A stretch of 64,000 nucleotides of DNA from Selaginella moellendorffii (taxonomy: Eukaryota > Plantae > Lycopodiophyta). Positions 29,425-64,000 of the stretch are shown here, in pieces; position 1 is the first letter of the stretch; every line of letters begins with the position of its first letter. Below the pieces are notes generated by a model. The model ran no database searches. It was not told the DNA's origin and saw only the letters and a list, made by a program, of their open reading frames with translations. The stretch spans positions 643,569 to 707,568 of the forward strand of contig NW_003314342.1 in NCBI RefSeq assembly GCF_000143415.4, written 5' to 3'. The translations under genes and the position numbers were made by a program.

Positions 29425-30807
29425 ATGGAAACGCTGGTTGTCTACGCGCGGTGTGGGCATTTGGAGGAATCGAGAAGGATCTTTGATGCATTGCCGGCCA
29501 AGAACATCGCGTCGTGGACGGCGCTCGCGAGCGCGTATGCCGAGAGTGGGCATCCGGGCGAGGCCAAGGCAGCGTTCGATCGAATGGCGGTGCGGGACGT
29601 AGTTTCCTCCACTGCGATGGTCAAGGCGCTGGGCGATTGCGGGCGGATTGGATCGAGCAAGGCGGTGTTTGATGCGATGCCCGAGAGGAACTGCAAGACG
29701 TGGGCGACGCTGCTGCGGGGATTTGCTCGCGGCGGAGAGATTGGGCGAGCGAGAGAGGTGCTGGATCGGATGCCCGAGACGAATGTGGTAGCGTGGACGA
29801 TCCTCGTGCAGGGTTTCGCGCAGCGCGGGCGAGTGGGCGATGCGAAGGCCGCGTTTGATTCCATGCCCGAGAAGAACAGCATCACTCGCGCGGTAATGCT
29901 CGTCATGTTTGCAGAGAATGGATTCGTGGAGGAGGCGGAGGATGTCTTCCAGGAGATTGTCCACCGAAACGCGATCCTCTGGGGGGCGATGCACTGGTGC
30001 TATGCCCAAAATGGGGATTTGATTCATGCCAAAAGTTTGTTTGATAGGATGCCTCTGCACAGCATACTTTCGTGGACGATTATGATCAAGTCATACGCGC
30101 TAAAAGGTGACGCTGATCAAGGAAAACAATTGTTTGAAGCAATGCCACACAGAGATCTTGTTTCATGGAACTCGATAATCGCTGTTTATGCCCAGAGAGG
30201 TCGTTTCAAAGACGCTATACGAGCGTTTTCTTTGTGTTGCTGCTGGGATTCCTATTCATGGAACACAATTCTCGTGGTATACGCTTTAGATGCAAATATT
30301 TGTGAGGCAAAGAAGACGTTTGATAGAATACCAACTTGGAATTTGGTCTCCTGGAACACGATGCTAGCAGCATATGCCCAGAGTGGCCATGCGTATTCTG
30401 CGATCCAGCTTTTTTGGGCGATGTTTCTTCACGGCTTTGATCCCGACAAGGCAGCGTTTGCCATCGTTTTGACGGCGTGTAGCCATCTGGGGCTTGTCAA
30501 GGAAGCAGTAAGCTACTTCACGGCAATGAGCTTTGACAATGGATTGGACCCTTCGCAAGACCATTACACCTGTATTGTTGATGCTCTAGGACGGCTAGGG
30601 CGATTGGAAGAGGCCGAGGATGTCCTGGAGAATATGCCTTTGTCAGCTGATGGAGTTGCATGGGCAACGTTTCTTACCGCGTGTAAAAACCACGGGGAGA
30701 TGAGTCGAGGGATGCATGCTGCGGAATTTACGTGCCAGTCCAGCCTTGTGAGTGATGCATTGCCTTATGTGATGCTGGAGAACATCTTCAGAGCAGTTCA
30801 GACTTGA
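29425..30807 (+). CDS. PLS-class PPR protein with E domain (no DYW); true start uncertain
   Basis: Tandem FDxMP.RxVVSW repeats; ACSHLGLV, HYTCIVDALGRLGRL, WATFLTACKNHG, PYVMLENIF. Confidence 0.85.
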   Translation: METLVVYARCGHLEESRRIFDALPAKNIASWTALASAYAESGHPGEAKAAFDRMAVRDVVSSTAMVKALGDCGRIGSSKAVFDAMPERNCKTWATLLRGFARGGEIGRAREVLDRMPETNVVAWTILVQGFAQRGRVGDAKAAFDSMPEKNSITRAVMLVMFAENGFVEEAEDVFQEIVHRNAILWGAMHWCYAQNGDLIHAKSLFDRMPLHSILSWTIMIKSYALKGDADQGKQLFEAMPHRDLVSWNSIIAVYAQRGRFKDAIRAFSLCCCWDSYSWNTILVVYALDANICEAKKTFDRIPTWNLVSWNTMLAAYAQSGHAYSAIQLFWAMFLHGFDPDKAAFAIVLTACSHLGLVKEAVSYFTAMSFDNGLDPSQDHYTCIVDALGRLGRLEEAEDVLENMPLSADGVAWATFLTACKNHGEMSRGMHAAEFTCQSSLVSDALPYVMLENIFRAVQT

Positions 30808-39132: not shown

Positions 39133-42100
39133 TATGAAACACAAAATCCCTAGGCCTCAAAGTGGAGCTGAAAGGGCACCATGTGGTAGTGGCCGAAGCG
39201 AAAGCCAAACAAGCGTAACACGTTTGGACTAAAAGCTCCGACTTGAAAAGGTCGAGAGTGGGAGTGGAACTCCCAACGAAGTGCTCGAGGAACAAACACA
39301 AAGTGAAAGAAAAGTGAGTCTCTAGAAAAGGGACACAAGAGGACCGACACATGACACGTGGAAGGACCTGAGATGGAGTCCAAGATGGAGTCTAAGATGG
39401 ATCCAAGATGGATCCGAAATGGAGTTTGAGATGGAGTCCAAGATGGAGTCTGAGAAATGGGACTTATGGAGGTTGTGAATGAGACTCCTCCAAGTGGTTG
39501 GAGGTGCGGTTAAGTGACTAAAGTAGAATGGAAAAATTAGTCGATTACAACTTGGTATCGGAGCTGTTCCTTAGTCCGACTTTTATTGATGCTTAAGTAT
39601 ATCACCACTTGTATGGGAATTAGAAGGTCCTAGGTATAGACCTATCCTCGAGGAGGAGCATGTCAAGAGGACATGGCTCTCCCCTCAAGTTCATGTGTGA
39701 ACTTGTGCGCAATGTGGTGGATGGAAAAGGCCAGTAAGGGAACGACTTTGGGATCTTGGGAACAATATAAAGGTTTCCTCAGAAAGTTGAGGATGTGATC
39801 CAGATGAGCGTTTGATGCAGTAAACGGGCTAATGTAGTTGTGGTAAACAACTATAGTTAGGATCACGGGAAAGATGCAAACTCCAAAACGATAATGGAGT
39901 CACAAGATTACCCTCATATAGTTGAGGTTGGTGCTCATGAATTTGAGACTGGAATTGATGATCGTGGGAGGTCAAATACGGTAGAGGACACAAGTCCTTG
40001 AAATGGTAGCCGGGGCTACCTTTAATAAATGTTGGAACAACCCAAGGAGTTGGGGGTGTACTTAGAGGATGAGTTGGTATTCTCATCACATGGATAAGTG
40101 GTCATAAAGGGCAAAAGGTTGCCCCTAGAGAACAAATCAAGTGTCGGAGTAACACTTGCAAAGATGGTCCTTGTGAGTAGGACATGAATACAAGGAGTTG
40201 TATTCCAGTGAGCTAGCACCTCAAAAGTAAGACCTTATGGGTCGTCGGATTAGCAAAATCCAAAAAGTCTGATGACTCTAATAGAGTTAAGGAATAATCC
40301 TAAGGGATCGAGAAGCATTTGGACTGAGGTGCGTGGTGCCCCATGAAGGATGGGGAGGATCTTGAGATCCAAGTATGAAAACAGTGTGTATCTCATTGAT
40401 GGCAAAATGTGCCACACTAAAGTCGTGGGAAAGGTGTTCCCAGAAGAAGCAACTTTAGTGCAGAGTTGTGTGCGAACACTATGGTGTAATGCTAATGAAT
40501 AGTTGGCATGAGAAACGACTGGGTTGGTCTTGGCAAAGACTTAGACACAAGTGCAAAGTGTCATAAAGGCAGACTCATGGAGCCGATGGTGTGGGGACAC
40601 CAAATGGGCCAAGGTGTGATACCTTCAGGTTATGTTGATGAGTTCATGAGAACCCTTTGCCAAGGGAATCCCAATGGAAATGAGAATGGCATAGCCTAAG
40701 CTGGAAAGCATGTGGTAGAGTGTGGTGACCCGGATAATGATGGAGGTGTGGAAGCATCAGCAATGAGTTGTGGGACTTGACAACTATGAGACAACTAAGC
40801 AGGAGGTGTAGGTAATTGGTTAAACGGGTAGAAAGTAGCTACCCAAGACTTCTTAAAGTTAAATATACCCTTATTGGGGATAAGTTGCTTATGTTGCGAT
40901 ATAATAAGTCAATGTCGTAAAAGGAAATGCTCATTGTCAAAGAGGCCATCATTGGGACACCCAAACACTCTAGAACACCAAGAGGTGGTATTTAGTGTTG
41001 CAAGGGCAATAAATAAGGCCCAAGGGACAAAGTCCCTGGCGAACGATGGATAGAAGGTGCTATCCAAACGTCCAAGATTGCAAAGATGGGAGAAATTTCT
41101 CTACCCGAATTGGACAAAGCCAAAAAGGGATTTTGGCAAAGGTAATGATGGGCATATAAAGGCATATGAGTAGCAACGTTAATCCCGGTGTGTGGGATTA
41201 CAAGGTGAGCATACTCGGATTGAGGAACCACTCCCGAGGTTATCGGGTAGATTCATCCCTATGAATACTTGCAAAGGCATGGTAGAAAGTGCAAAGCCAT
41301 CCTCCTAGTCTGAAGGAGAATAATTGAAGGAAACATATGAGGCCAAAAAGCAAAGTAGTAAAGGGATGGAACCGAACCATAGGAATCGACAGGCATAACT
41401 GAGGGTGGTTATGTAAATTGGGAGTGGAGAATCAAGAGGGTGCTCAAGGATGTTGTTACTAGCAACCGCGATGCCATGGAGAGTCTAAAATGGGGAATTA
41501 TCCATATTAGACCATATGGTGACTAGGGAGCTTGCAAAGGAGAAGCCTTAGTGAGTTAAGGAATAGAGTTCCTTGAAGGTTCCCAAAGACAATTTTAGGT
41601 AGATAAGTACTTAGAAAGCCAAGTGTAAATGATTCTTAAAGTGCGTGAAATCAGAGTGGCGCAGCAGAAGCGTGATCTTGAAGCTAGCTATGAGGCGAGG
41701 CTATCAAGGTTGGGGAAATTGTTCCCGAGTGTTCAAAGAGAGGGCTTTGAACAAAAGGCGATGGTTAAAGACTTTCACGCTTATGCATGAACCATGTTAC
41801 AGTAGCCGAATGACTTGCTAAGCGAGATTGGCGAGTCAGGGGAATAAATCCCCTAGTTGAAGGTGCTAACTTCAAAAGGGGTGGCCCATGGGGCCGAGCA
41901 TGGAGGATATGCAAGATCACAAACTTGTCAAGCGAGAGGACTTGGTAGTGTAGAGGAACTAGGTTCCTAAGCTGTGATCTATAGCATGCTTTAAGTACAT
42001 GTTGGTGCACCGGCGTGGGGAGTCACGCTAGGCATCCTGTGTGATGCCGTCCGTAGATGCATATACGGAGGTTGGGTTCGAGTCCCGACCCTCTAGTGCT

Positions 42101-45100
42101 TGGGTTCGAGTCCCAACTCACTAGGGCGTGGTGATGGTTTGGAATATGAGGATATTCATATTTCAGTGGTTATGGACTCTTAGTGGGGAGATTGGTTTGG
42201 GCACACCGCCAAGCGAGGGATGCCTTGGAGTTGTGATACACAGTTAGATTGCTTAGTATGAAAGCTCAGCATATCTAACTTGAACACTTTGGTGCAAGGG
42301 GGCACCAAGGACGAGGTGATTGAGATGGGGACACTCAATCTTAGTTGCTATGGACCCTTGGCTGGAAGGGCTGGCTTGGGCGCACCACCAAGCGTGGGGG
42401 ATGCCCCTGGGTCATAGTCAACAACTTAAAAGTCTAGGAGACCTAGTACCTATTGGCAAACCTATTAAGGTGCCGAGGTTAGATCACTAAGTGATCTTAT
42501 GGTTAAAAACAAGGATAAGGTCCTTGTGAGGTTAAGGGATAAAGTTCTAAGTTCAAAGTGTTGATTGGAACTATTGATGATAGTGTGGCTTGGTCAAGGT
42601 GATCAAGTGGGAAGGACACCTAAGGGAAATGAGATATGTTAATGCAATGACATAGTGAGTCTGAGGAAAGTAGTCTCTATAAAAGACCCATGGGAGGGTC
42701 ACAAAGTTGGGCCGTAAATAGACCCCATAGCAGAAGATGCTAAAGAGACGTACTAGGGGTGAACACCCTCCGGACTTGGCAAAGGAGAGTCTTTGCTATA
42801 GAACCGAAAGGATACCTCGAAAATGGAGGTAGCGATCCTATGTTGCTAGATGCAACAATCAAGGATAGGAGCAAAAGACTAGTGGTTAAGTAAAGAGCCA
42901 TAGAAACCATGGGAAAGAATCTAAATGGCAAAGTTAGGCCAAGAACACTAAGGTGTTGGGTGCTAACAGATTGTGGGAAATGCAAATGTGTTTCCAAGGA
43001 TGGATTCCCAATTGCTTCAATTTGGCGAAAGTGGAAGCTCTAGGGGAGGGAGCGGTAAGGTAGCCAAACACAAATTATGATAACTGGAACTTAGTGCCAA
43101 TGGTGGCACAAAATAAAAAAGAGGATGATGATGCCCTCAAGTAGAGAACTTTATAAGATGGGGAAGTGGAATTGCATAATATGTGCAATGCAAGGTGTTG
43201 GAGACATCCAAGAAATTGACTTCGAGAAGTCAAAGTTAAAAGTTCCAAAGTGCAGGGGTTATATCGATGGAAAGCGAGACTACTTGAGAATGAGTAGTGG
43301 GATTGAGTTAGAGAAGGTATCTTTAACAACTTTAGCGAGAACTAAACTAGTAAAAGGAGAGAACCACCACAAGTGGTTCAATCAGTCTTTAAGTTGGAGA
43401 GATTATACTCCTTAAAGGATGAGGAAGGCATGGTGAGCCTTCAATATCAAACCATTGACGAATATTGGTGAGGGGCCAAAGATGGAAATGGTAATACAAG
43501 TTGGTATTACTTTATAAAATAGTTTATCGTTCGATGAGGACATCGAACTTTGTCTATGGGTGGTGGAGTTGTGAGACACAAAATCCCTAGGCCCCAAAGT
43601 GGAGCTGAAAGGGTGCCACGTGGTAGTGGCCGAAGCAAAAGCCAAACGAGCGTAACACATTTGGACTAAAAGCTCCAACTTGAAAAGGTCAAGAGTGGGA
43701 GTGGAACTCCCAACAAAGTGCTCGAGAAACATGCACGAAGTGAAAAAAAAGTGAGTTTCTAGAAAAGGGACACAAGAGGACCGACACATGACACGTGGAA
43801 GGACCCGAGATGAAGTCCAAGATGGAGTCCGAGATGGATCCGAGATAGATCTGAGATGGAGTCCGAGATGGATCCGAGATGGAGTCCGAGATGGAGTCCG
43901 AGATGGACCCGAGATGGAGTCCGAGATGGAGTCCGAGATGGACCCGAGATGGAGTCCAAGATGGAGTCTGGGATGGACCTGAGATAGAGTCCGAGATGGA
44001 GTCCGAGATGGACCCGAGATGGAGTCCGAGATGGAGTCTAGATGGAGTCCGAGATGGACTCGAGATGGAGCCTGAGATAGACCCGAGATGGAGTCTGAGA
44101 TGGACCCAAGATGGAGTCCGAAGTCGAGACCGAGACCAAGACCGAGATTGAGACCGAGATCGGGACCGAGACTGAGACTGAGACCGAGGCTGAGTCCGAG
44201 TCCGAGTCCGAGTCCGAGTTTGAGTCTGAGAGGGTGAAAGCCCAAAGCGCTCGTCTCCCAAACCCTGGGGGGTTTGGTGAGCTCCAAAAGTATAGTAAGG
44301 GGGAGGACTGCAGTGGAGCCAGTTTGGCCAGGAAAGGCTAGTTTGGCCTAGGAAGACTATATCCAATGTTGGGTGATGAGTTGCCCATTGGGAAGTCCAA
44401 AACTAGAGTGAACATGGACCGACAAACGGGGTAGCTTAGTGAAGTGTTCAAGAGCCGGCTCTAGTTCCCCCGGGAGATCAACTGGCCGATGCTCCCAGTC
44501 TAAGTGTGGGTGGCACTACCTACTTGGATACCTGGTGTGGCTCAACGAAACCTCACTCTAAGCCCATGGCTAGAGCACCCAAAGGCAGAAGGCGAGGAAA
44601 GTACCCAGGAGGCCCACGTAGGGCCACGGTGTTCCGAAATGTTGCCCCAAAGTCCCAAACTATGGAAAGGAAGAGGAGTAGCCCTCTGGTGTGGTGACTA
44701 AGGAGACAGTCACACAGTGAGGAAGTCCCAGAGGACAGTTGGACTTAGTGGTCGGGCCTGTGGGCCTTGATCTAGTGGCAGTGTTAGCGAACACGACCAT
44801 GGACAAAAAGGGACTTGATGGGGACTGGAAAAGAGATATTGGGGAAGGCTATTCCCCATGTCTGTGACATCCTAAGGATGCTAAGGAGTGGATCTGGGAT
44901 GATCACTCATGGACGGATGGTCTAGCCTTTGAGAGACGGGATTGTGATGCAGGTGGCATTAGTCCACCGGTGTGACCAGGGTGAATGGGCATGGCCTTAG
45001 CATAACGGGCCGATATATCGGTGGTACCTTGGGGTGTCGGTCATGGGATCTGATATGTGGAGCACTTGGACTAAGTGTAGAGGTTGAATGGCATGGATGC

Positions 45101-45225
45101 CATTCTCGGGGCTAGCAAGCCCCAAGTCTTGAATGGGACTTATGGAGGTTGTGAATGAGACTCCTCCAAGTAGTCGGAGGTGTGGTTAAGTGACTAAAGT
45201 AGAATGGAAAAATTAGTCGCTTACA
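39133..45225 (+). mobile_element. Non-autonomous large LTR element B1: 5' LTR 39133-39549 (internally deleted), 3' LTR 43570-45225, ~4-kb non-coding core
   Basis: Perfect TSD TCTTG (39128-32 and 45226-30); PBS ttggtatcggagc; PPT atgggtggtggagt; splits gag of element A. Confidence 0.92.
43800..44230 (+). repeat. LTR minisatellite of 12-mer GAGATGGAGTCC and 11-mer GAGATGGACCC units, followed by GAGACC/GAGTCC hexamers
   Basis: Directly visible tandem units. Confidence 0.95.
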
Positions 45226-46204
45226 TCTTGGTGCTAGTTCTTTCGTTCGACCGAAGTTCTTTTGTGGGAATCCTAGGGATGATGTGTACCATTGGTTCAA
45301 TCATTTCACGGTGATTGCCACATATCATTCTTGGGATGATACTCCACGTTTGTGTGAGTTTCCCACGTGTCTCCAAGGATGGTGTTGCAATGGTACAATG
45401 GTTTGAGCACAACCACTCGTGGGGATTGGAGTGTTCTCCTGGGCGTCTTCAAACGCGCCTTCGAACATGCTGACAACTGTGATGATGCCTTCCAACAATT
45501 GCATCATCTTTGCCAAGGGCCATCTAAGTCAGTGATGCAATTTGGCTTTTATTTCCGAAGTCTTTTACTTCGTGTGGAGCCACATATGTCGAAGCGGATC
45601 AAGCTAGGAATGTTGTGGCTAGCACTTCGTTAAGATCTTGTCAGACTTGTGCATGCACTTGCTCCCGCCACCCTTGACGATGCTCTTTGCTTGGTATAAC
45701 GTTATGAGACGTCGCCTCTTCCACTTCTTGCTGCCCGTCCTTCAACTCTCCTTCTTATAGGTGATAGTCCTATTCTAATGGAGGTTGATGTTGCTGCTGC
45801 TCGAGTCCAAGGACAAGGGCGAGGACATGGTCATGGCCGTGATGTTCGCTGCTGGGCGTGTGATAAAGTTGGTCATACTTATCGGCGCTATCGGCGTTTT
45901 CCGATTGGCGACCTCCATTTCTTGGGTGGAGACTTTGGCGTCATCAATGTCCTATTGATGCTGCTGCAGTGGAAGGTTTGGACACTGAGATGCATCCGGG
46001 AAACGAGGAGTCACGCGAGTAACAGAGGGACCTTGCGTGAATAAATCAGTGACCTCTCCATCTTAATTTCGGGAGTATCATCAAGGGGTTCACTCGACAC
46101 CGGTTCATCTAGTGTTACTTTCCAAGCTCATTTTTATAACAAGAGGTCTCCTATTATTCTCTCTTTGTTGGTTGATACAAGTTCGAGTTTATCTTTTATT
46201 GCTC

Positions 46205-47685: not shown

Positions 47686-47919
47686 TATGAGACACAAAAT
47701 CCCTAGGCCCCAAAGTGGAGCCGAAAGGGTGCCACGTGGTAGTGGCCGAAGCGAAAGCCAAATGAGCGTAACACGTTTGGACTAAAAGTTCCGACTTGAA
47801 AAGGTCGAGAGTGGGAGTGGAACTCCCAATGATGTGCTCGAGGAATGAGCACGAAGCGAGCAATAAGCGAGGCTCCAAAAAGGGACCCAAAAGGACCAAC
47901 ACATGACACATGGAAGTGT

Positions 47920-48432
47920 CTGAGATGGACCCGGGTTGGAGTCTGAAGTGGAGTTCGAGAAAGACCCTGAGATGGAGTCCGAGATGGAGTCTGAGATGGA
48001 CCCAAGATGGAGTTCGAGATGGAGTCCGAGATGGACCCGAGATGGAGTCCGAGATGGACCCAAGATGGAGTTCGAGATGGAGTCCGAGATGGACCCGAGA
48101 TGGACCCGAGATGGAGTCCGAGATGGACCCGAGATGGACCCGAGATGGAGTCCGAGATGGACCCGAGATGGAGTCCGAGATGGAGTCCGAGATGGACCTG
48201 AGATGGAGTCCAAGATGGACCCGAGATGGAGTCCGAGATGGAGTCCGAGATGGACCCGAGATGGAGTCCGAAGTCAAGACTGAGACCAGGACCGAGACCG
48301 AGATCGAGACCGGGACCGGGACCGAGACTGGGACCGGGACCGAGACCGAGACCGAGACCGAGGCCGAGTCCGAGTTCGAGTCCGAGTCCGAGTCCGAGTT
48401 CGAGTTCGAGTCTGAGTTCGAGATCGAGTCTG
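47920..48432 (+). repeat. Same LTR minisatellite, B2 5' LTR
   Basis: Directly visible tandem units. Confidence 0.95.
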
Positions 48433-51400
48433 AGAGGGTGAAAGCCCAAAGCGTTCGGCTCCCAGACCCTGGGGGGTTTAGTGAGCTCCAAAAGTATAGT
48501 AAGGGGGAGGACTGTAATGGAGCCAGTTTGGCCAGGAAAGGCCAGTTTGGCCCAGGAAGGCCGGACCCAGTGTTGGGTGATGAGCTGCCCACTGGGAATT
48601 CCAAGACTAGAGTGAACACGGACCGACAAGCGGGGTAGCTTGGTGAAGTGTTCAAGAGCTGGCTCTAGTTCGCCCGGGAGATCGACTGGCCGATGCTCCC
48701 AGTCCAAGTGTGGGTGGCATTACCTACTTGGATACCTGTCGTGGCTCAACGGAACCTTGCTCTAAGCCCATGGCTAGAGCACCTAAAGGCGAAAGGCGGG
48801 GAGAGTACCCATGAGGCTTGCGTAAGGCCACGGTGTTCCGAAATGTTGTCCCAAAGTCCCAAACGGTGAAAGGGAAGAGGAGCAAACCTCTAATGCAGTG
48901 ACCAAGGATACGGTCACATGGTGAGGAAGTCCCAAAGGATAGTGGGACTTAGCGGTCGGGCCTGCAGGCCTTGATCCAGTGGCAGTGTTGGCGAACACGG
49001 CCATGGACTAAAAGGGACTTAGTGGGGACTGGAAAAGAGTTGTCAAGGAAGGCTATTCCCCATGTCTGCAGACATCCTAAGGATGGTAAGGAGTAGATCT
49101 GGGATGATCACTCATGGACAGATGGCCCAGTCTTTGAGAGACAAGACTATGATGCTGGTGGCATTAGACCACCGGTGTGACCAAGGTGAATGGGCATGGC
49201 CTTAGCGTAACAGGCCGATATGTCGGGGGTACCTTGGTGTGTCGGTCATGGTATCAGACATGTGGAGCACTTGGACCAAGTGCAAATGTGGAGTGGCATG
49301 GATGCCATTCTCGGGGCTAGCAAGCCCCAAGTCCTAATTGGGACTTATGGAGGTTGTGAATGAGAGTCCTCCATGTGGTTGGAGGTGCGATTAAGTGACT
49401 AGAGTAAAATGGAAAAATTAGTCGCTTACAACTTGGTATCGGAGCTGTTCGTTAGTCTGACTTTTATTGGTGCTCAAGTATATCACCACTGGTGTTGGCA
49501 TCAGAAGGTCCGAGGAGTGGGCTTATCCTTGAGGAGTAGCAGGTCGGGAAGACATGGCTCTCCATTACAGTTCATGTGTGAACTTGTAGACAAGGTGGTG
49601 GATAGAAAAGGGCCAATAATGGAACAACTTTGGGATCTTGGGAACAGTGTAAGGTTTTTCTCATTGAGCTGAGGAGGTGATCTAGATGAGCGTTTGACTC
49701 AGCAAACTGGCTAATGTAGTTGTGGTAAACAATTATAGTTGGGATCACGGGGAAGATAGAGACTCCAAAAACAATAAAGGAGTCACAAGATTATCCTCAC
49801 ATAGTTGAGACTAGTGCTCATGAAGGTGAGACTGGAATGGATGACCGTGAGAGGTCAATTATGGATGAAGACACGAGTCCTTGAAGTGGTAGCCAATTTT
49901 ACCTTTTATAAATGCTGGAACAAACCCAAGGAGTTGGGGGTGCGCTCAAAGGATGAGTCAATATTCTCATCATATGGACGAGTAGTCCTAAGGGGCAAAG
50001 GTAGCCCACAGAGAACAGAAAATAATAAAGTGTTAGAGTGACACTTGCAAAGACAGTCCTTATGAATACACGAAGTTGTATTCCAGTGTGCTGGCACCTC
50101 AAAAATAGGACCTTATGGGTCATTGGATTGGCAAAGTCCGAAAATGCTAGATGACTCAAGTGGAGTCAAGGGATAATCCTAAAGGATTGGTAAAAGCATT
50201 TAGACTGAGGTGTGTGGTGCCCCATGAAGGATGGGAAGGATCTTAAGACCCAAGTATGAGAATAGTAGGTATCTCATTGATGGCAGAAGGTGCCATGCTA
50301 AAGTCGTGGGAAAGAGTTTCCCGGAAGAAAACAACTTTGACACAAAGTTGTGTGTGGACTCTATAATGCAGTGCTAATGGATAATTGGCATAAGAGACAA
50401 TCATATTAGTCTTGGCAAAAAGACCTAGACACAAGTAAGAAGTGTCATAAAGGTAGGCTCCTGGAGCTGATGGTGTGGAGACACCGAAGGTGCCAAGGTG
50501 TGCTGCCTTGAGGTCAAGTTGGCGGGTTTATGAGAACCCCTTCCAAAGGAATCCCAATGGAAATGGGAATAGCATAGCCTATGCTAAAAGGCATGCGGTT
50601 AGAGTGTGGTGACCTAGATAATGATGGAGGTGTGGAAGCATCAGCAATGAGTTGTAAGACTTGACAACTATAAGACAACTAAGCAAAAGGTGCAAAATAA
50701 ATCATTAAACTGGTAAAAGGCAACTACCTAAGACTTCTTATTGGGATAAGGAAGTTAGATATACCCTTATGGGGGAGAAATTGTTTATATTGCGATAGTA
50801 AATCAACATCGTAAAAGGAATGCTCATTGTCAAAGAAGCCATCATTGGGACACTGAAGCACTCTGGAACACCAGGAGGTGGTGTTTGGTGTTGTGAGGGC
50901 ACGGATAAGGCCCAAGGGACAAAGTTCCTAGTGAATGATGGATAGGAAGTGTTATCTAAATGTCCAAGGTTACGGAAACGGGGGAAGTCTGTCTACCTAA
51001 ATAGGACAAAGCCAAAAAGGGATTTTGGCAAGGCTAGTGATGGGCATATAAAGGCCCATAAGTAGCAACGGTAATTCCAGTGTATAAGATTACGAGGGGA
51101 GCAAACCCAAATTGAGGAACCACTCCCTAGGCTATCGGGTAGGTTCATCCCTATGAATACTTGCCAAGGCAAGGTGGAAAGTGCAAAACTATTTTCCTAG
51201 TTTGGAGGAGAATGACCAAAGGAAATGTATGAGGCCAAAAGGCAAGTAGTAAAGGGATAGAACCGAACCATGGGAATTGACAAGTATGACTAAGGGTGGT
51301 TATGCAAGTTGGGAGTGGAGAATCAAGTGGGTGCTCAAGCATGTTGTTACTAACGACTGGGATGTCATGGAGAGTCTAAAACATGGGATTGTCCATGTTA

Positions 51401-53699
51401 GACTATATAACAATTGGAAAGCTTGTGAAAGGAGAGACCTTAGCAAGCTAAGGAACAGAGTTCCTTGAACGTTCCTCCTAAGTAGATAAGTACCTAGACG
51501 TCCAAGTGTAAATGGTTTATAGAGCGCGCAAGATCAGAGTGGCACAGCAGAAGCGTGGTCTTGAAACTTGCCGAGAGGCGAGGTTATCAAGGTTAGGGAA
51601 GTAGTTCCCGAGTGTTCAAAGAGAAGGCTTCGAATGAAAGTCAATGGTTAAGGACTTTCACGCTTATGCATGAACCATGTTACGATGACCAGATGACTTG
51701 CTAAGTGAGATTGGCAAGGTGGGGGAACGAATACCCTAGTTGAAGAAGCCAACTTCAAAGGGGTGGCCCATGGGGCCGAGCATGGAGGAGTCCATGGTTG
51801 ATCACAGGCTTGTCAAGTGAGAGGACTTGGCAGTGCGGAGGAACTAAGTTCTTAAGCTGTGATCTGTAGCACACTTTAAATATAAGTTGGTGCACCGGCG
51901 TGGAGAGTCACGCCAGGCATCTTGTGTGATGCCGTCCGTAAATGCATAGGGTTCGAGTCCCGACCCTCTAGTGCTTGGGTTCGAGTCCCAAATCACTAGG
52001 GTGTGGTGATGGTTTGGAATATGAGGACACTCATATTTCGGTGGTCATGGACTCTTAGTGGGGAGACTGGTTTGGGCACACCACCAAGCGAGGGATGCCT
52101 CGGAGTCGTGATGCACGGTTAGATTGCTTAGTGTGAAAGCTCAGCATATCTAACTTGAACACTTTGGTGCCAGTGGCATCAAGGACGTGGTGAATGAGAT
52201 GGGGACACCCAGTCTTAGTTGCCATGGACCCTTGGCCGGAAGGGCTGGCTTAGGTGCACCGCTAAATGTGGGGGATGCCCTTAGGGTCATGGTCAACAAC
52301 TTAAAGGTTTGGAAGACCTAGTACCTATTGGCAAACCTGTTAAGGTGCCAAGGTTAGATCACTAAGTGATTTTATAGCAAAAAACAAGGACAAGGTCCTT
52401 GTAAGGTTAAAGGATAAAGTTCCAAGTTCAAAGTGTTGATTAGAACTATTGATGATAGTGTGGCTTGGTCAACGTGACCAAGTGGGAGGAACACCTAAAG
52501 GAAATGAGCTATGTCAATGCGATGGCATAATAAGTCCAAGGAAAGTAGTCTCTATAAGAGATCCATCGGAGGGTCTCAAAATTGGGCTATGATAGAGCCC
52601 ATGGCAGAAAATGCTAAGGAGACGTACTAGGGGTGAACACCCTCTAGACTTGGGAAAGCAAAGTCTTTGCTATGGAATTGAAAGGATACCTCGAGAATGG
52701 AGGTGACGATCTTGTGTTGCGTGGTGCAACAATCAAAGATAAGAGCAAAAGACTAGTGGCTAAGAAAAGGGCCATGGGAATCATGGGATAGAAGCCAAAT
52801 GGCAAAGCTAGTCCAAGAACACTAATGTGTTGGATGCTAACGGATTATTGGAAAGCAATATGTTTCCAAGGATAGGTTCCTAATTGCTCCGATTTGGCGA
52901 AGGGGGAAGCTTCAAGGGATGGAGTGGTAAAGTAGCCAAATGATAGGGCCATGGACAGCCCTAGCACGAATTATGATAGCTAGAACTTAGTGCTAAGGGT
53001 GGCAGGATATCGAAGAGAGGATGATGGTGCCCGCAAATAAAGAACTTCCTAGGATGGGAAGTGGAGTTGCACCATGTGCAATGTAAGGTGTCGGAGACAC
53101 CTAGGAGATTGACTGTGAGAAGTCAAAATTAAAAGGTTCCAAAGTGCAAGGGTTATATCGATGGAAAGTGAGACCACTCGAGAATGAGTAGTGGGATTGA
53201 GTTACAGAAGGTGTCTCTAACAAGTTTAGTGAGAACTAAACCAGTAAAAAGGAGAAGACCACCACAAGTGGTCCAATCAGTCTCTAAATTGGAGAGACTA
53301 CACTCCTTAGAGGATGGATAAGGCATGGTGAGGCTTCAATGTCAAACCATAGACAAATATTGGCTGAGTGCCAAGGATAGAAATGGTAACACATGTGGGT
53401 GTTACTTTACAAAATGGTTTACCGTTCGATGAGGACATCGAACTTCGTCTATGGGTGGTGGAGTTGTGAGACACAAAATCCCTAGGCCCCAAAGTGGAAC
53501 CGAAAGGGTGCCACGTGGTAGTGGCCGAAGCGAAAGCCAAATGAGCGTAACACGTTTGGACAAAAAGCTCCGACTTGAAAAGGTCGAGAGTGGGAGTGGA
53601 ACTCCCAACGATGTGCTCGAGGAATGAGCACGAAGCGAGCAATAAGCGAGGCTCCAAAAAGGGACCCAAAAGGACCAACACATGACACGTGGAAGTGTC

Positions 53700-54048
53700 T
53701 GAGATGGACCCGGGTTGGAGTCCGAAGTGGAGTCCGAGAAGGACCCCGAGATGGAGTCCGAGATGGACCCGAGATGGATCCGAGATGGAGTCCGAGATGG
53801 ACCCGAGATGGACCTGAGATGGAGTCCGAGATGGACCCGAGATGGAGTCTGAGATGGAGTCCGAGATGGATCCGAGATGGACCCGAGATGGAGTCCAAGA
53901 TGGAGTCCGAGATGGACCCAAGATGGACCCGAGATGGAGTCCGAGATGGAGTCCGAGATGGACCCGAGATCGGGACCGAAACCGAGACCAGGACCGGGAC
54001 CGAGACCGGGACCGGGACCGAGACCGAGTCCGAGTCCGAGTTCAAGTC
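53700..54048 (+). repeat. Same LTR minisatellite, B2 3' LTR
   Basis: Directly visible tandem units. Confidence 0.95.
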
Positions 54049-57000
54049 TAAGAGGGTGAAAGCCCAAAGCGTTCGGCTCCCAAACCCTGGGGGGTTTGGT
54101 GAGCTCCAAAAGTATAGTAAGGGGGAGGACTGTAGTGGAGCCAGTTTGGCCAGGAAAGGCCACTTTGGCCCAGGAAGGCCAGACCCAGTGTTGGGTGATG
54201 AGCTGCCCACTGGGAAGTTCAAGACTAGAGTGAACACGGACCGACAAGCGAGGTAGCTTGGTGAAGTGTTCAAGAGCTGGCTCTAGTTCTCCCGGGAGAT
54301 TGACTGACCAATGCTCCCAGTCCAAGTGTGGGTGGCACTACCTACTTGGATACCTATCGTGGCTCAACGGAACCTTGCTCTAAGCCCATGGCTAGAGCAC
54401 CTAAAGGCGAAAAGCGGGGAGAGTACCCATAAGGCTTGCGTAAGGCCACGGTGTTCCGAAATGTTGTCCCAAAGTCCCAAACGGTGAAAAGGAAGAGGAG
54501 CAAACCTCTAATGCAGTGACCAAGGATACGGTCACATGGTGAGGAAGTCCCAAAGGATAATGGGAATTAGCGGTCGGGCCTGCAAGCCTTGATTCAGTGG
54601 TAGTGTTGGCGAACACGGCCATGGACTAAAAGGGACTTGGTGGGGACTGGAAAAGAGTTGTCAGGGAAGGCTATTCCCCATGTCTGCAGGCATCCTAAAG
54701 ATGCTAAGGAGTAGATCTGGGATGATCACTCATGGAGGGATGGCCCAGTCTTTGAGAGACAGGACTATGATGCTGGTGGCGTTAGACCACCGGTGTGACC
54801 AAGGTGAATGGGCATGGCCTTAGCGTAACAGGCCGATATGTCGGGGGTACCTTGGGGTGTCGGTCATGGTATCGGACATGTGGAGCACTTGGACCAAGTG
54901 CAAATGTGGAGTGGCATGGATGCCATTCTCGGGGCTAGCAAGCCCCAAGTCCTAACTGGGACTTATGGAGGTTGTGAATGAGACTCCTCCAAGTGGTTGG
55001 AGGTGCGGTTAAGTGACTAGAGTATAATGGAAAAATTAATCGCTTACAATGCATATGTACAGCCGTTGCCATAAAGAATGAAAATTGGTTTTGCCACATG
55101 ACACAAGTGTAGACGGCAACGTGTTGGGGTTTCGAGAAACTTCATGCATATCTACATGGTTCTCGGACGTTATTTGAAGGTGACCATGCTGCTGTTACTT
55201 CATTATTGAAGTGGAAGAACTTGGTTGGTCATATTGCTCGGTGGGCTTTGAAGCTTTAGATATATGATTTTGATGTTGTTCATCGCTCTGGGAGTTCTAT
55301 GGCTGATGCTAATGCCCTTTCTTGAGCTCCTCTTCCTTCTCTACTCTCTTCTCATGTTTCTGACAAGCCTATTGTTCTAGCATTTGTCGATTTTCTAGAC
55401 GAGGATTTTGTGCCGTCGGCGGTTGCTGTACTTGATGTTCAGTGTCCAAAAGGCGCAGAGCAAGATCTACCTTTTCTTGATGAAGTTCACAAGGCTCAAA
55501 AGTTTGAACCGTGGATTCGAAGGCTTCGAGATGCGTTTGAAAATCCTGCATCACTTACTAATGACTTGCCTTTCCGATATTTACATTCTCAATATCGCCT
55601 TGAAGATGGCCTTCTTTATTTTTTGGGGACGGATTCTGATGGTCATTTATGGCTGGTGGTGCCTTCTATCTTTATCCCACGGTTTCTTCATGCCTACCAT
55701 GATTCTCCTATTTTAAGTAGGCATATGGGACATCATTGTGTGACCGAGAAGCTGCGCAGGTCTTTCTATTAGCCGGAGATGCGACGTGATATTATCTGGT
55801 ATGTGCGTAGCTGCGTTTAGTGCCAAGTTCGTAATACTCCCCCTTGTGCTGTGGAAAGACGGTTGGAGTCAATTGCAGTTTTCCATCCGTTTGAGTTGGT
55901 GGCATTTGATCTTATGGGACCTTTTCCATAGTCGGCTGCTGGCAATGAGTATGTTATTATTGCTTTTGACTACTTAACTCGTTGGGTGTAAGTTGGTGCT
56001 TGTGCTAACGCCTTTACAACTACTGTTGGATACTTCCTCCTCAATCGAGTGGTGTTCCAGCATTCTTGTCCAGAGTAGATTCTTTCGGATAATAGTCCCG
56101 CATTTATGGCTGAGGCATTTCATGTTTTGACATCTCGGTTGGGGATATACCACACTTTCACGAGTGCTCATCATCCACAATCAAACGGTCTGATGGAACG
56201 GCTTGTTCGGACATTCAAAGGGATGATTGCAAAGTATGTGAACTTTCAGCATTTGGATTGAGATGGTTATTTGCCGTCTCTTCAGTATGTCTATGTCACA
56301 AGGGTGCAGAGTTCTGTTGGTGCTTCACCATATAAACTTTTATATGGTCATGATCCAATATTACCAATGGAGTTGCATTTACCTTCGCAATTGCCACGAG
56401 CTCCCGATGCTAAATCGTGGGATCAATATTTGACGAGCATTCTTCCACTTGTCCGAGCAGAGTCTGCCGAACACTTAGGCCACGTACAAGTGGGATAACA
56501 ACAGTGCTACAACTCCCATCATCGTCCACCTGTGGAGTACAAAGTGGATGATTTGGTGTTAGTCTGTTTTCCCCATCTTATGGTATGTGGTTTATTTAAG
56601 GGGCTCCTTGCGTAGTGGAAAGGATCGTATCGGGTGTTGTGGCAAGTTAGACCACAAGTTTATAAGGTTCGGCATGATGTCCAACAAGCCGATCCTTCGA
56701 AGATTATGTATATGCAGCGGTTGAAACACTTCATACAAAGGGATTAGGAGCAGTTAATACCACCTACAGATTCCCCAATGTCTCCTCCAGGTCCCAGCTT
56801 GTCTACAAGAGAACCCTGACGGCCTTCCATTATTCCAAGAGGAGGGGATGATGTGAGGGCCAAGTGTATGACTACGATGCCGTATACTAATATTAGTGTA
56901 GTGGGATTTTGATAGCCATCGGATTGGTTTCAATCTGGACCACTCGCTCCTGTATATAAGCTAGGGTTTTTGGGCTAATTGATATGCACATTTTCTGTAT

Positions 57001-58136: not shown

Positions 58137-58507
58137 TGTCGCGAATGTGACTTCGGGTATTGAAAGATACTTGTCGGCTAGTCCTTACGGACACTCTCTC
58201 CTTACTGCCATGACAGCAAGAGGTTGGTACTGCTGGTTCCCTTTATGTCTCCGCCCAAGCTAGTTGAGAAACTGGTCAGCACATGTGCACTTAGACCNNN
58301 NNNNNNNNNNNNNNNNNNNNNNNNNNNNNNNNNNNNNNNNNNNNNNNNNNNNNNNNNNNNNNNNNNNNNNNNNNNNNNNNNNNNNNNNNNNNNNNNNATA
58401 AAGGGAACCAGCAGTACTGACCTCTTGCCGTCATGGCAGTAAGGAGAGAGTGTCCGTAAGGACTAGTCGACAAGTATCTTCCAATACCTGAAGTCACATT
58501 CGCGACA
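58137..58507. mobile_element. TIR element spanning the assembly gap: >=110-bp TIRs TGTCGCGAA...TTCGCGACA, 5-bp TSD CTCAA
   Basis: 58137-58246 is the reverse complement of 58398-58507 with 6 transitions; CTCAA at 58132-36 and 58508-12. Confidence 0.85.
58298..58397. other. Assembly gap (100 N)
   Basis: Run of N. Confidence 1.
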
Positions 58508-61500
58508 CTCAAGATGCTCTACACAACATAACTTTAGAGTGGGATTATATTGGAATCTCAATCTCTTCTTTTGTTGATGTTTCAACTAAGTTGGAAATAG
58601 TTTAGTTCAATGGAAACTATCCCAAACTCTTTTTGGTAATAGTATACCATCTATCATACTAATAAGCACTTGCATTTCTTCCTCACATTATTGAAAACAA
58701 AAATATACATTTATTAGATGAGCTATTAAGAAGCAACCAAGCAAATAGAAATCAAATACTAATGATTTAACAAGTAGAGGTCCCTTGGGGACAATGGGGA
58801 ATAAAAATAACAATTAATCAAAGCATGGACAGCGATCGAAGATAAAAAATACAAGAATCAAGAATCTAGAAACTTGTATCAACAACAACTTTGAGGACAA
58901 CAACATTTAGAATATAACCACTACTCAGCTCATACTTTTTGAACATCACCATCGACTGGAAAACGCAAACGCTCATAGTGAGGATGTGCACGACTTTATG
59001 CAACACAATTAAAGGTAGGCCACAATTACTTTACAACAATTTAACACAACAAGGACTCATAAAAAGAGTAGCCATAGTATGCACTCCTACTTGATTCCAA
59101 AGTTGGCGAGCAACAACTTTGTTGAAAACTAATCAACTTTATCGAGTTGAGTACAACATAGCAACACAAATACTAATATATAAGATTATGTTAGTCTATA
59201 CCACATGATTCTACAACTACACAACATTTCCTCGATAAGAACACAATAAACCAAAGACAACAACAACAAAACCAAGAAAGCAAATTCAAGAAAATGATAA
59301 CTCAAGAAAACTCTAGCACAACATTGAATGTACAAACACAACCCTGATCCACTTAAGAAACAAGAGTGAGATCAAATACAACAAATATGAGAAGAGAAGA
59401 AACAACTCCAGCACAAATTAAAAGTAGACAAGCAATAGAAGACTCAAGCTTAAATCGAAATCCTTGAGACTATATTCAAGACTTTCGACAAAATGACCCA
59501 AGCCACACATGTTGGCAAACCAAGCAACATCAATACAACCAAAGACACAGTCAACCAAAATTTAGACTTAGATCAAGATTTACCACCACTCGAAACTCCC
59601 GAATACGAAGATTACAACACCAACAACTCTCAGTCTTATCTAGCTTCTCCAAAAACTGAACCATCACCAACAGTAGAAAGATGGCACTCATCAGCCTAGT
59701 AACACCCTATGCCATCATGATTACATATCCAATCTTCACCAGTAGCAAAACTGAAGATGTAGAAAGACATTTCCAGCAATTCAACCAAATTATATAACTC
59801 AATCAGCAAGAAGACAATAAAGAACTTTTATTCCCTTTCACACTTAAAAGAAAAGCATTAGCATGGTATTATAATCTAAGTTTTAGGAAAAAGTTAAGCA
59901 ATTCAAAGAGAAGTACCAACCCGGCGGCACAACAGCTGAATACCTAGAACATCTTAAAAGCATCAAATAAGGCAGTAAAAAAGATATCAAAGGCTATACC
60001 CGACGATTCAAATATCATGCAAAGCACTACAAAGATCTATTCACTAAACAAGGTAAATATATGGTATGTATATGGACTGAAGACGATATACTAGCAAATG
60101 GTTGCTCTCGCAAGTATGGAAGAAGATTTAGATGTCGAGACCTCTATTAACAATATTTCCAAGAAAATCAAGAACCTCGAGAAACAGCTTTGAAAATTTT
60201 TAAGAGTAAAAATAACAAGAACAAACAACTCTTCTGATGATAAAGAAGAATACAAACTTGAAGTCATGAAAAAAGACAAGGATCAAGAACTTACTAAAAT
60301 ACTCAAGAAAGTTACAATTAAGAACGAACTTAAAGAAGGAGTATGGTGTACAAAATGTAAAAACAAAGGACACATCCTAACAAAGTGTAAACTACTGATT
60401 CCTAAGTGTTAGATATGTGAAAAAGAAGGATATATAACAAAGATCTATTGAGACAAAAGAGCAACTGAAGTCACACAAGTCGAAAACATACCTTGAACTC
60501 CTACACCAACTAAAAGACATTACAATCAACCCAGACAAGAACCACAATAGTGGTAGCTAAACTACTAGAATCAAGGTACATATAATCCTCACCCTAGATA
60601 CCATCGACAATACAACAATGGCAACGAAGACAATTAGTATTAACAACCATACTAGTAGGCTTATCAGTAGCCTTATCAAAACAACCAACAATGGAGACCA
60701 CCACCCGGCAAAACAACTGTCAACAACAGTACCACAACAATCAACAATGGAGACCATCTCTGCAATAACTAAACTATCAACAGCAAAATCAACAATATGA
60801 TCTACCACTTAGAGTATTTCCTTGCAACAACTATCAATAGCAACCTCAAACTCAAGAAATCCGACCCCAATACTAACAACAACAAAATCAAGGAAATTGA
60901 CCTCCTCAGCAAGATCAGCAACATCGAAGACCTCCTCTAACAACAAGAAATGTCAATATTGACTAATCGAAGATGAACACTTTGAAGATGAACCTAAGGT
61001 AAAAGCTCTAACTCGAAGTCAGAAAAAACACTACACTCCTAAAGATGACCTTGAGGAAAAGTCAAAAAACAAGAACTCCAAGACAAAGTGCAAGAAATTT
61101 CAAGGCACAAATGGCAACAAAGTAAGGAGTTATTCAACTCAATTCAGCAAACCCTTCAACAACAACAACCTGAAATTGAAGATGATCAGGAAATTATAAC
61201 TAAAACTCTATCAAGAAAAGAGGAACAACCAAAGCCCATCACCAACATTCTTCAATAAAGTATCATACTCACCTTTCTAGAACTTTCACAGGTAGCTTCA
61301 TACTTGAGACAACAACTTCTACACATATGCCTACCTTCACATACCTTTCAATCTCTCCAATGTACCATTCCGTGTTTTAATAGATCATCATTGACACTTT
61401 TCAAAAATACCTCACTAAATTTATGCGAGTATTTATGGATGCCTTTAGTTCTTTAGCAACAAAGAAGATCATCTCCAATGCTTAGAGAAATGCTTCATCA

Positions 61501-61905
61501 AATGCCATAAACACAATATCATATTGAACCTTGACAAGTGCATTTTCTTCGTCAAATCAGGAATTCTACTTGAACATGTAGTTTCCAAAGAAGGAATCCT
61601 CATTGACAAGGAGCAAACCCTCACAATCACCAACATACAACATCCATTCGACATTTCAAGCCTTCGATCATTCCTTGGTAAGATGGGATACCATTGAAGA
61701 TTCATCAAAAACTACACCAAGATTGCAAAACCTATCACTAAACTCCTCAAGAAGAATTAAGCTTACAATTGGACTCAAGATTGTCAAAATGCCTTCATCA
61801 ACCTCAAGAATTCCCTCACCCAAGCTCCAATACTTGCTCAACCAAACTGGAACAAAGACTTCAACATCCAAGTCGACACCTCCCTCAGAGTGATCCTTTT
61901 GCAAC

Positions 61906-62502
61906 TGTAAGCAACCAAAGGGAACGACTCGAGAGACGATCCATTGGGGTTCAAATATAGAGGGAAAGGGCCCATGAACAAGAGTGCACCCCCTTTTCCA
62001 ATCGGTTAAGGGTCTTGGGATATTTGGGGTTAAGCGTCCTTGGGTTTGAATAGTACTGGGCTGGGTGACCTCCCGGGAAGTCCAAACTCAGGAGCTTACA
62101 TTTGGTATCAGAGAGGGTCTCGGGTCCGACTCTGTTGGTTGGCTTAGGGGAATCGCACCACATGTTGATTGACATCTGGCTGGTCCAGTTTGCTCCCACT
62201 GGGCTCGACCCGAGGGGTAGGGTGTCAAGAGAGCGAGGCTCTCGGGAGAGCTGCGGCTCTCAGCTTCCGTTCACGAGGGCGTGAACTTGCAGGGAAGCGT
62301 GGTGGATTGTAAGCAACCAAAGGGAACGACTCGAGAGACGATCCATTGGGGTTCAAATATAGAGGGAAAGGGCCCATGAACAAGAGTGCACCCCCTTTTC
62401 CAATCGGTTAAGGGTCTTGGGATATTTGGGGTTAAGCGTCCTTGGGTTTGAATAGTACTGGGCTGGGTGACCTCCCGGGAAGTCCAAACTCAGGAGCTTA
62501 CA
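61906..62502 (+). mobile_element. Cassandra-type TRIM: identical 195-bp LTRs (61906-62100, 62308-62502) carrying a 5S rRNA-derived segment; 207-bp internal domain
   Basis: TG..CA LTRs; TSD GCAAC on both sides; PBS TGGTATCAGAG (tRNA-iMet); PPT-like gggaagcgtggtgga; 5S-like GTTAAGCGTCCTTGGG..TAGTACTGGGCTGGGTGACCTCCCGGGAAGTCC. Confidence 0.95.
62029..62083 (+). promoter_or_regulatory. 5S rRNA internal control region (A box-IE-C box) copy in the 5' LTR; second copy at 62431-62485
   Basis: Matches the plant 5S rRNA segment GTTAAGCG...TAGTACT...TGGGTGACCTCCCGGGAAGTCC; lacks the 5S 5' third. Confidence 0.88.
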
Positions 62503-63432
62503 GCAACAACAAGAAGATCATAAAGACTGACTAATCTACTATGCAAGTTGAAGACTCAACTTAACCGAAATGAACTACACTACAACTGAAAAAAAAGCTC
62601 TAGCAATGATCTACACACTCCAAAAGTTTCATTACTACCTACTCAATAACTTCCTCCACCTTCTCAACAAAACAATCCTTACCAGCAGAATTGCACAATA
62701 GTTCTTACTACTTCAAGAACATAACTTCGAGATCATCTATAAGCCTAGAAGAGAATATGAACACCTAAGCCGCATTACAACCAATGAACAATTGAAACAT
62801 AATATAAATGACTTTCTTGACTCCAATATCCTTTGAATCCACACATCACCAACCTAGATGGACAACATCTACTACTACCTCATAACAACAACAATACCAA
62901 GTTGATATTCAACCTTTGACAAGCGCAAGTAATTTGTCTTGAAGACAAAACCATATTCAGTCGTGGGAAGAAAATTGTACAAGGAAGAGACAACATTTTA
63001 CAAAGATGTGCAAACCCAAAAGAAACACAAGATTTACTTGAAGAAGCCTACTATGGATAAGTAGGAGGGTATTTTACTGAAGAAATCACAGCTCAAAAAA
63101 TTTTACAAGTAAGACTTTGGTGGCTAACACTTTGGCACAACTAAGCCAAGTTCTATAAAAAATGTGACATCTACTAGTGAACCAAGTATGCACTAAAGAA
63201 ATAAACTCAAGAACTTTATCCAAAAATTCCACTCAAACCTTTTTAATGATGAGGATTCGACTTTGTTGGTCCACTTATGACAATCTCCAAGCAAAATTAG
63301 TACATTTTAATTGCAATAGATTATATGACAAAATGGGCTGAAGCTCAACCAATAAAGACTACTACAACAAAGAACACAATAAAGTTCATTTATGAAAACA
63401 TCATCACAAAATATGGCTTACCTTGAGAACTC

Positions 63433-64000
63433 TGTGAAACACAAAATCCTTAGGCCCCAAAGTGGAGCCGGAAAGGGTGCCACGTGCTAGTGGTCGAAGC
63501 GAAAGCCAAACGAGCATAACACGTTTGGACTAAAAGCTCCGACTTGGAAGGTCGAGAGCGGGAGTGGAACTCCCAACAAAGTGCTCGAAGAGCAAGCACG
63601 AGGCGGACCCGAAATGGAGTCCGATATGGAGTCTGAGATGGACCCGAAGTGGAGTCCGATATAGAGCCCGATATGGAGTCCGATATGGAGTCCGAAGTGG
63701 AGTCCGAGATGGAGTCCGATATGGAGTCCGAGATGGACCCGAAGTGGAGTCCGATATGGAGTCCGATATGGAGTCCGAGATAGAGTCTGAGATGGAGTCC
63801 GAAGTGGAGTCTGATATGGAGTCCGAGATGGAGTCCGAGATGGACCCGAGATGGATTCCGAGATGGATTCCGAGAGGGCCCCGAGATGGAGTCTGAGATG
63901 GACCCGAGATGGAGTCCGAGATGGACCCGAGATGGAGTCCGAGATGGACCCGAGATGGAGTCTGAGATGGAGTCCGAGATGGAGTCCAAGATGGAGTCCG
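63433..64000 (+). mobile_element. Start of a third family B LTR (B3) with minisatellite; runs off the window
   Basis: tgtgaaacacaaaatcc start as in B1/B2, then GATATGGAGTCC/GAGATGGACCC arrays; interrupts the integrase of the 59.7-63.4 kb gypsy. Confidence 0.9.

Follow-up and report, generated by a model that had tools for sequence, protein, structure and literature searches.

Does a lycophyte possess an element of the Cassandra type, and, if so, was it inherited together with the Cassandras of other plants or put together anew? Cassandra is the textbook LTR element that has captured a 5S Pol III promoter in place of a Pol II promoter. Published work places it in ferns and seed plants and dates it to their common ancestor, and Kojima, who dates it to the fern-angiosperm ancestor, calls its helper unknown (PMC10886601). 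The main plant-wide TRIM survey covered Selaginella moellendorffii without finding Cassandra: eight TRIM subfamilies were annotated in this species, none of them named Cassandra, and 5S sequence was absent from every non-Cassandra TRIM (Gao 2016, PMC4717578). In the literature searched I found no report of Cassandra in a lycophyte. The window analysed here is a stretch of 64,000 nucleotides of S. moellendorffii DNA, and the element at 61906-62502 is, I am highly confident, a complete, recently inserted and protein-less Cassandra-type TRIM, its predicted Pol III mechanism included. The earlier note, made from the letters of this stretch, had taken the host for a lycophyte, and rightly so, as the window contains a GT34 open reading frame whose product shows 100% identity to an S. 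moellendorffii protein at NCBI. Host gene reading frames lie at 7572-12319, 18217-19149, 29425-30807 and 34957-35994; among them are the GT34 xyloglucan xylosyltransferase, an NYN plus OST-HTH/LOTUS pair and several PPR and PPR-DYW frames.

The element measures 597 bp in total, well within 1 kb (Table 1). Its two short LTRs begin with TG and end with CA, and TGTAAGC and GCTTACA form a 7-bp terminal inverted repeat. The coding capacity is limited to short chance open reading frames without gag or pol, which is the structure of a TRIM; a translated search of other assemblies with an 82-aa chance frame across LTR and primer-binding site (PBS) returned no candidates. The identical LTRs, the perfect GCAAC duplication on both flanks and the Met PBS that the earlier note had described all hold up. 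The PBS, TGGTATCAGAG, agrees at 11 of 12 bases with the Cassandra PBS TGGTATCAGAGC given in PMC7215508 and PMC10853983, differing at the 12th, and single-base variants of this site occur among published Cassandras (PMC10853983 Suppl. Table 2A). A tRNA gene for a direct check of the PBS was not found within the window. The tract AGGGAAGCGTGGTGGAT resembles published Cassandra polypurine tracts (PPTs) ending in ..TGGAT or ..GTGTA, so that the arrangement is that of Cassandra, an initiator tRNA-Met PBS following the 5' LTR and a PPT preceding the 3' one. The internal domain had been called long, which it is not: its 207 bp compare with 190-193 bp in fern Cassandras and 157-309 bp in those of grasses (PMC10853983 Suppl. 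Table 2A, for the ferns as far as that table carries over the values of Kalendar 2008).

Table 1. Coordinates of the 5S-bearing TRIM, its older relatives, the related large non-coding LTR element (LARD) and the insertion site, counted from the first nucleotide of the window
Feature	Position	Strand	Remarks
5' LTR, TGTAAGC...GCTTACA	61906-62100	+	195 bp; 100% identical to 3' LTR
3' LTR	62308-62502	+	195 bp; 5S domain 62412-62499, A/C boxes 62430-62472, T4 run 62396-62399
Target-site duplication, left, GCAAC	61901-61905	+	frame restored by removing element and one copy
Target-site duplication, right, GCAAC	62503-62507	+	perfect match to left copy
Primer-binding site, initiator tRNA-Met, TGGTATCAGAG	62103-62113	+	2 nt after 5' LTR
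Internal domain, 207 bp	62101-62307	+	non-coding; homologous to PBS-proximal leader of LARD in window
Polypurine-type tract AGGGAAGCGTGGTGGAT	62291-62307	+	abuts 3' LTR
5S-rRNA-derived domain, 5' LTR	62010-62097	+	Rfam RF00001, 34.4 bits, E 4.1e-5
Internal control region: A-box GGTTAAGCGTCC, 18-nt spacer with intermediate element, C-box GGGCTGGGTGACC	62028-62070	+	2 mismatches to Kalendar 2020 string
TATA-like AAATATAG	61953-61960	+	~20-30 nt upstream of predicted start site; putative function
Predicted R region: start site to only T4 run of LTR	61979-61997	+	predicted from 5S promoter geometry
Dead Ty3/gypsy-type pol, left: RT C-terminus and RNase H-like positions 1-39	61449-61904	+	PF00078 weak; PF17919 E 3.4e-10
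Dead pol, right: remaining RNase H-like domain	62508-62698	+	PF17919 positions 65-96, PF17917
Cluster of at least 4 old, AT-rich, deaminated copies/LTRs of the 5S-TRIM family	14834-17183	.	~70% identical to young copy
Nearly full old copy of the 5S-TRIM family	15604-16125	+	within 14834-17183 cluster
Old LTR of the 5S-TRIM family	15025-14834	-	within 14834-17183 cluster
LARD LTR copies (n = 5)	39135-39556, 43570-45232, 47686-49437, 53465-55048, 63431-64000		12- and 23-bp minisatellites inside LTR
LARD copy 1: LTR tip TTACA, PBS, ~230 nt collinear with TRIM PBS-internal-PPT-U3(1-58)	39545-39776	+	
LARD copy 2: LTR tip, PBS, leader homologue	49426-49603	+	

The 5S internal-promoter segment claimed for each LTR is real. 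Alignment to 5S rRNA, on which the earlier note had staked its reading, was obtained in both LTRs, the match in the 3' LTR having the same score and E value as that in the 5' LTR. With a score of 34.4 the segment does not reach the gathering score of 38, since 4 nt stand in place of model positions 22-57 and ~32 nt are thereby missing: the part of helices II and III is deleted, and that of helices IV and V is kept. No 5S match anywhere in the window reaches the gathering score, and the segment has neither the full length of ~120 nt nor the tandem units of a genuine 5S gene or pseudogene array. The published Cassandra search string (Kalendar 2020) consists of the A-box RGTTAAGYRHGY, 18 nt and the C-box RRRATRGGTRACY. 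In its strict form, with 0 mismatches, the string does not match the TRIM; at 2 mismatches both LTRs match with exact 18-nt spacing (0/100 shuffles), the A-box and the C-box each being one base off the published consensus. Chance resemblance to 5S was rejected in view of the Rfam match together with this string match. The control region, with A-box, intermediate element and C-box, is sense-oriented in each LTR, as in Cassandra, and is situated towards the 3' end, the 5S region occupying 62-91% of the LTR. In TRIM structure, 5S control region, PBS and PPT the element fits Cassandra, as the earlier note had proposed, and with a small-RNA-gene-derived internal promoter in the LTR, a PBS, a PPT and a target-site duplication the element also has the make-up of the TRIMp3 class. 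The only T4 run of each LTR is found 31-34 nt upstream of the A-box (61994-61997 and 62396-62399), just upstream of the stretch aligned by Rfam, and GTTCAAAT (61949-61956) overlaps the TATA-like box. The predicted folds are unremarkable; the 5S-containing part is no more stable than shuffled sequences (z -0.6), and the internal domain likewise has the stability of shuffles (z -0.7).

Among known systems, the Cassandras of angiosperms (grasses, legumes, Rosaceae, Asteraceae and others) share with the TRIM a 5S control region in both LTRs, complete with A-box, intermediate element and C-box, a non-coding sequence of less than 1 kb and the type of PBS (PMC7215508, PMC10853983, PMC12486564). The terminator inside their 5S-derived domain would have its candidate counterpart in the T4 run of the TRIM. 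Their LTRs are longer, however (234-439 bp), with the 5S region nearer the middle (25-78% of the LTR). Ajax, a nemertean 5S-TRIM of the TRIMp3 class, likewise has LTRs with only the promoter part of 5S (A-box, intermediate element, C-box), a 5-bp target-site duplication and a presumed Pol III template, but it is an animal element of independent origin without sequence relation to the TRIM (Kojima 2024, PMC10886601). From S. moellendorffii itself, Helenus-1_SMo and the SmoRetroS elements have TRIM structure and 5-bp duplications (PMC10886601, PMC4717578). Helenus-1_SMo also has a Pol III-type promoter, but in a tRNA-derived LTR of 120 bp (PMC10886601), and SmoRetroS4 differs in measuring 393 bp with LTRs of 104 bp (Gao 2016, PMC4717578).

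The closest dimensions are those of fern Cassandras. For Nephrolepis exaltata, Didymochlaena truncatula and Sphaeropteris cooperi, elements of 565-606 bp with LTRs of 187-208 bp are given, as far as the data of Kalendar 2008 are reproduced in PMC10853983 Suppl. Table 2A, and the TRIM matches these in total, LTR and internal length. Fern elements also share with it the sense 5S control region close to the PBS, the initiator tRNA-Met PBS and the 5-bp duplication; their hosts are ferns, whereas the TRIM resides in a lycophyte. With a relaxed pattern, a fern-type Cassandra was recovered from plant DNA in a metagenome (L001:5932-6442, contig Ga0068630_1001449). This L001 element is complete at 511 bp, has LTRs of 188 bp that are about 93% identical, the duplication ATTTT and the PBS TGGTATCAGAGC, from which the TRIM departs at the 12th base only, and it carries the sequence of a Nephrolepis exaltata Cassandra primer from the supplement of PMC7215508. 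The published Nephrolepis internal domain is longer than that of the L001 element, which contains three direct repeats of ~30 nt; microsatellites flank the element.

The TRIM and the L001 element agree in the placement of the 5S core, which lies towards the 3' side of the LTR and leaves 49-62 nt to the LTR end; each has only one T4 run in the LTR, 31-38 nt ahead of the A-box. With this one fern comparator, 43 of 53 positions of the 5S core are identical (z 17.6); the PBS, together with its immediate extension, aligns as well (z 7.6). Outside these parts no similarity is significant, either in the upstream LTR (z 0.6-1.8) or in the internal domain (z 0.4). The motif GTTCAAAT stands 80 nt upstream of the A-box in the TRIM and 82 nt in the L001 element, a weak agreement (about p 0.01 by position). 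Since nothing outside the 5S core and PBS region aligns with the L001 element, I reject a recent horizontal transfer from a fern. In both elements the PBS is followed ~20 nt later by CTCTG(A), able to pair with CAGAG of the PBS (TRIM 62103-62134, L001:6121-6155); the stretch in between, I would presume, loosely resembles the complement of the tRNA T-arm.

The family has older members in the same window. In the old copies between 14.8 and 17.2 kb the 5S core is still recognisable, and C>T and G>A changes make up 67-76% of the mismatches to the young copy. Decayed copies and a young one within one window indicate a family of long standing in this genome whose activity lasted until recently; the locus under study is an ordinary young copy of it.

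A different kind of relative came to light with the internal domain. Searched with nhmmer, this domain gave a second match at 39552-39721 (E 9e-5), where the leader next to the PBS of a LARD-type element, large and non-coding, is located. The LARD is unlike the TRIM in its LTRs of ~1.7 kb with minisatellites, its non-coding interior of ~4 kb and its lack of 5S; a 5S remnant was searched for in it and none was found, nor were matching target-site duplications found for two apparent full LARD elements. Its termini and leader, in contrast, resemble those of the TRIM. The LTR ends in TTACA in copy 1 and in GCTTACA in the other three, followed in TRIM-like fashion by two bases, then T and the PBS; the LTR starts with TGT.AG, and the initiator tRNA-Met PBS precedes a leader of ~170 nt. 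Even without the PBS, the TRIM internal domain matches both LARD leaders (z about 10, 0/500 dinucleotide shuffles), and the alignment extends to the motif GTGAACTTG...GTGGTGGAT that ends the TRIM internal domain. The LARD has a PPT-type motif GAACTTG...GTGGTGGA(T/G), and its PPT region and LTR start (GAACTTTG...GGTGGTGGAGT, then TGTGAGAC across the LTR boundary) resemble their TRIM counterparts. Following the internal copy of the PPT motif in the LARD, ~58 nt match nt 1-58 of the TRIM LTR. This continuation is clear for copy 1 only (z 5.6, 0/2000 shuffles), copy 2 giving z 1.3. The alignment ends at the TATA-like box, immediately ahead of the 5S module. What is new here, as read from the alignments, is this homology of internal domain, PPT region, LTR nt 1-58 and LTR tip to a LARD. 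Elements that depend on one helper and are not autonomous are expected to have their cis-acting parts in common. From the shared parts I therefore infer one putative shared helper, of which TRIM and LARD are probably both parasites, and the TRIM internal domain is probably a functional leader and not filler.

Where the family came from is the part of the question on which the evidence divides. Not far short of an even chance, in my estimation, is that a TRIM/LARD-type backbone of the lycophyte gained a 5S promoter module, for example when a fragment of a 5S gene, or a SINE derived from 5S, inserted into an LTR, in which case the element would be Cassandra-like but not a descendant of Cassandra. 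The lack of significant similarity to the L001 element outside the 5S core and PBS region points this way, as does the different cut of the 5S piece, which lacks ~32 nt here whereas the fern element keeps ~110 nt. LTR nt 1-58, internal domain and PPT, moreover, are homologous to the local LARD up to the very border of the 5S module, and captures of this kind have happened more than once, as nemertean Ajax demonstrates (PMC10886601). On the other hand, the TRIM matches the fern Cassandras in overall size, in the length of its LTRs, in where and in which orientation the 5S core lies, in the T4 run upstream of the A-box and in the type of PBS, and missing similarity in the flanks says little after >400 Myr. 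Known Cassandras have a core of ~70 bp in common and only 44% overall LTR identity (PMC10853983); as they share so little beyond this core, the comparison with the L001 element neither proves nor excludes common descent.

Somewhat below that I would place vertical descent from a Cassandra in the vascular-plant ancestor, which stays a serious candidate. It would account for an architecture that is the same as in fern Cassandras, for the 5S core shared with the fern element and, weakly, for the spacing of GTTCAAAT, and the decayed copies show a long residence in the S. moellendorffii genome. Yet the shared sequence consists entirely of host-derived, highly conserved parts (5S core, complement of the tRNA) and of very short matches, and the comparison rests on one fern element. 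If descent from such an ancestor is correct, the origin of Cassandra would be pushed well before the fern-angiosperm ancestor.

More tentative, and rather unlikely when taken as a whole, is a further proposal that unites these observations: TRIM and LARD would both depend on one putative autonomous helper and would share an inherited cis-module of LTR tips, initiator tRNA-Met PBS, leader of ~170 nt, PPT region and U3 positions 1-58, into which the 5S block would have dropped within lycophytes, independently of Cassandra. This would add another independent origin of 5S-driven LTR elements to those of plant Cassandra and nemertean Ajax, and the shared leader would be a direct handle in the search for the helper that mobilises Cassandra-type elements. 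A candidate gag-pol helper might be recognised by the signature GCTTACA-NN-TGGTATC[AG]GAG, followed by the leader GTCCGACT.

How the TRIM would be transcribed can be predicted from its promoter. In 5S genes the A-box starts near +50 (PMC12486564, PMC10886601), and the Pol III logic of Cassandra has been set out before (PMC10886601, PMC12486564, PMC7215508). By this geometry the 5S control region would recruit RNA polymerase III to a start ~50 nt upstream of the A-box, near 61979-61985, which is ~20-30 nt downstream of the TATA-like AAATATAG. In the 5' LTR the polymerase would have to pass the weak T4 run, located at +15 to +18, and it would terminate at the corresponding run of the 3' LTR, giving an RNA of ~420 nt with a terminal redundancy of ~15-18 nt; for Cassandra an 18-nt redundancy is stated in papers after Kalendar 2008, to the extent that these papers repeat it. 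The LTR would then divide into U3 of ~74 nt, R of ~15-18 nt and U5 of ~103 nt, and with the internal promoter situated in U5 it would be carried along in the RNA. Proteins of a putative autonomous LTR retrotransposon would package this RNA in trans, initiator tRNA-Met would prime the first strand and the tract before the 3' LTR the plus strand, and the copy would integrate with a 5-bp duplication. Pol III use, the start site and read-through of the first T4 run are thus predictions drawn from the nucleotide sequence. Further T4 runs are absent along the predicted RNA, though unremarkably so (P about 0.44 in shuffles).

It is improbable, though by no means negligible, that the 5S segment is instead a passive relic and that Pol II transcribes the element from the TATA-like box as in ordinary TRIMs. 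The box is suitably spaced from the predicted start site, a T4 run only 15-18 nt after that start would hamper Pol III, and both boxes deviate from consensus by one base. This is difficult to reconcile with a young copy that keeps the exact 18-nt spacing and near-consensus boxes. Nor is the position of the T4 run peculiar to this element, since Cassandras are reported with a T-run terminator in the 5S-derived domain (PMC12486564) and the L001 fern copy has its T4 run upstream of the A-box as well. I therefore prefer Pol III as the probable polymerase.

With respect to the insertion itself, the TRIM is inserted inside the RNase H-like domain of a decayed gypsy remnant. The earlier note had placed it between RT and RNase H, but it is the RNase H-like domain that is split (PF17919 positions 1-39 on the left, 65-96 on the right). 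Removing the TRIM and one GCAAC yields a continuous, though dead, pol frame (..VDTSLRVILLQ/QQEDHKD..), the uninterrupted site reading ..CCTTTTGCAACAACAAG.., and this restoration of the frame identifies the locus as a true integration. A paralogous copy of the gypsy host that could serve as an empty site was not found within the window. The 12-bp tandem array at the right end of the window is part of another LARD LTR and cuts off the 3' part of the gypsy host.

The TRIM has a GC content of 0.53 and a CpG observed/expected ratio of 0.59, against 0.36 and 0.29-0.36 in the flanks. CpG is retained across the whole element (0.70 in the internal domain) amid strongly deaminated surroundings, from which it follows that the insertion is far younger than the gypsy host element. 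At assumed substitution rates of 1.3e-8 to 5e-9, the lack of any difference over 195 bp gives only an upper limit of about 0.6-1.5 Myr for the age. Of the description as very young, the recent insertion stands, on account of the identical LTRs, the perfect duplication and the CpG content, while the emphasis goes further than this bound. That the insertion is in fact older, with LTRs homogenised by gene conversion or an artefact of assembly, is very improbable, for although identity over only 195 bp per LTR carries little information, the duplication is perfect, CpG sites are kept throughout within deaminated flanks, PBS and PPT are intact and no gap is close by. The closest assembly gap, 100 N at 58298-58397, lies ~3.5 kb upstream of the TRIM. 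An assembly artefact was rejected in view of the exact repeats, the duplication and the restored pol frame.

The strict published string misses this TRIM family, which may explain the gap in lycophyte reports. A family of fern-like architecture in a lycophyte would mean either that Cassandra originated at the base of the vascular plants or that the same solution has arisen again. The most useful new lead is the homology of the internal domain and LTR tips to the LARD, which offers a concrete route towards the helper.
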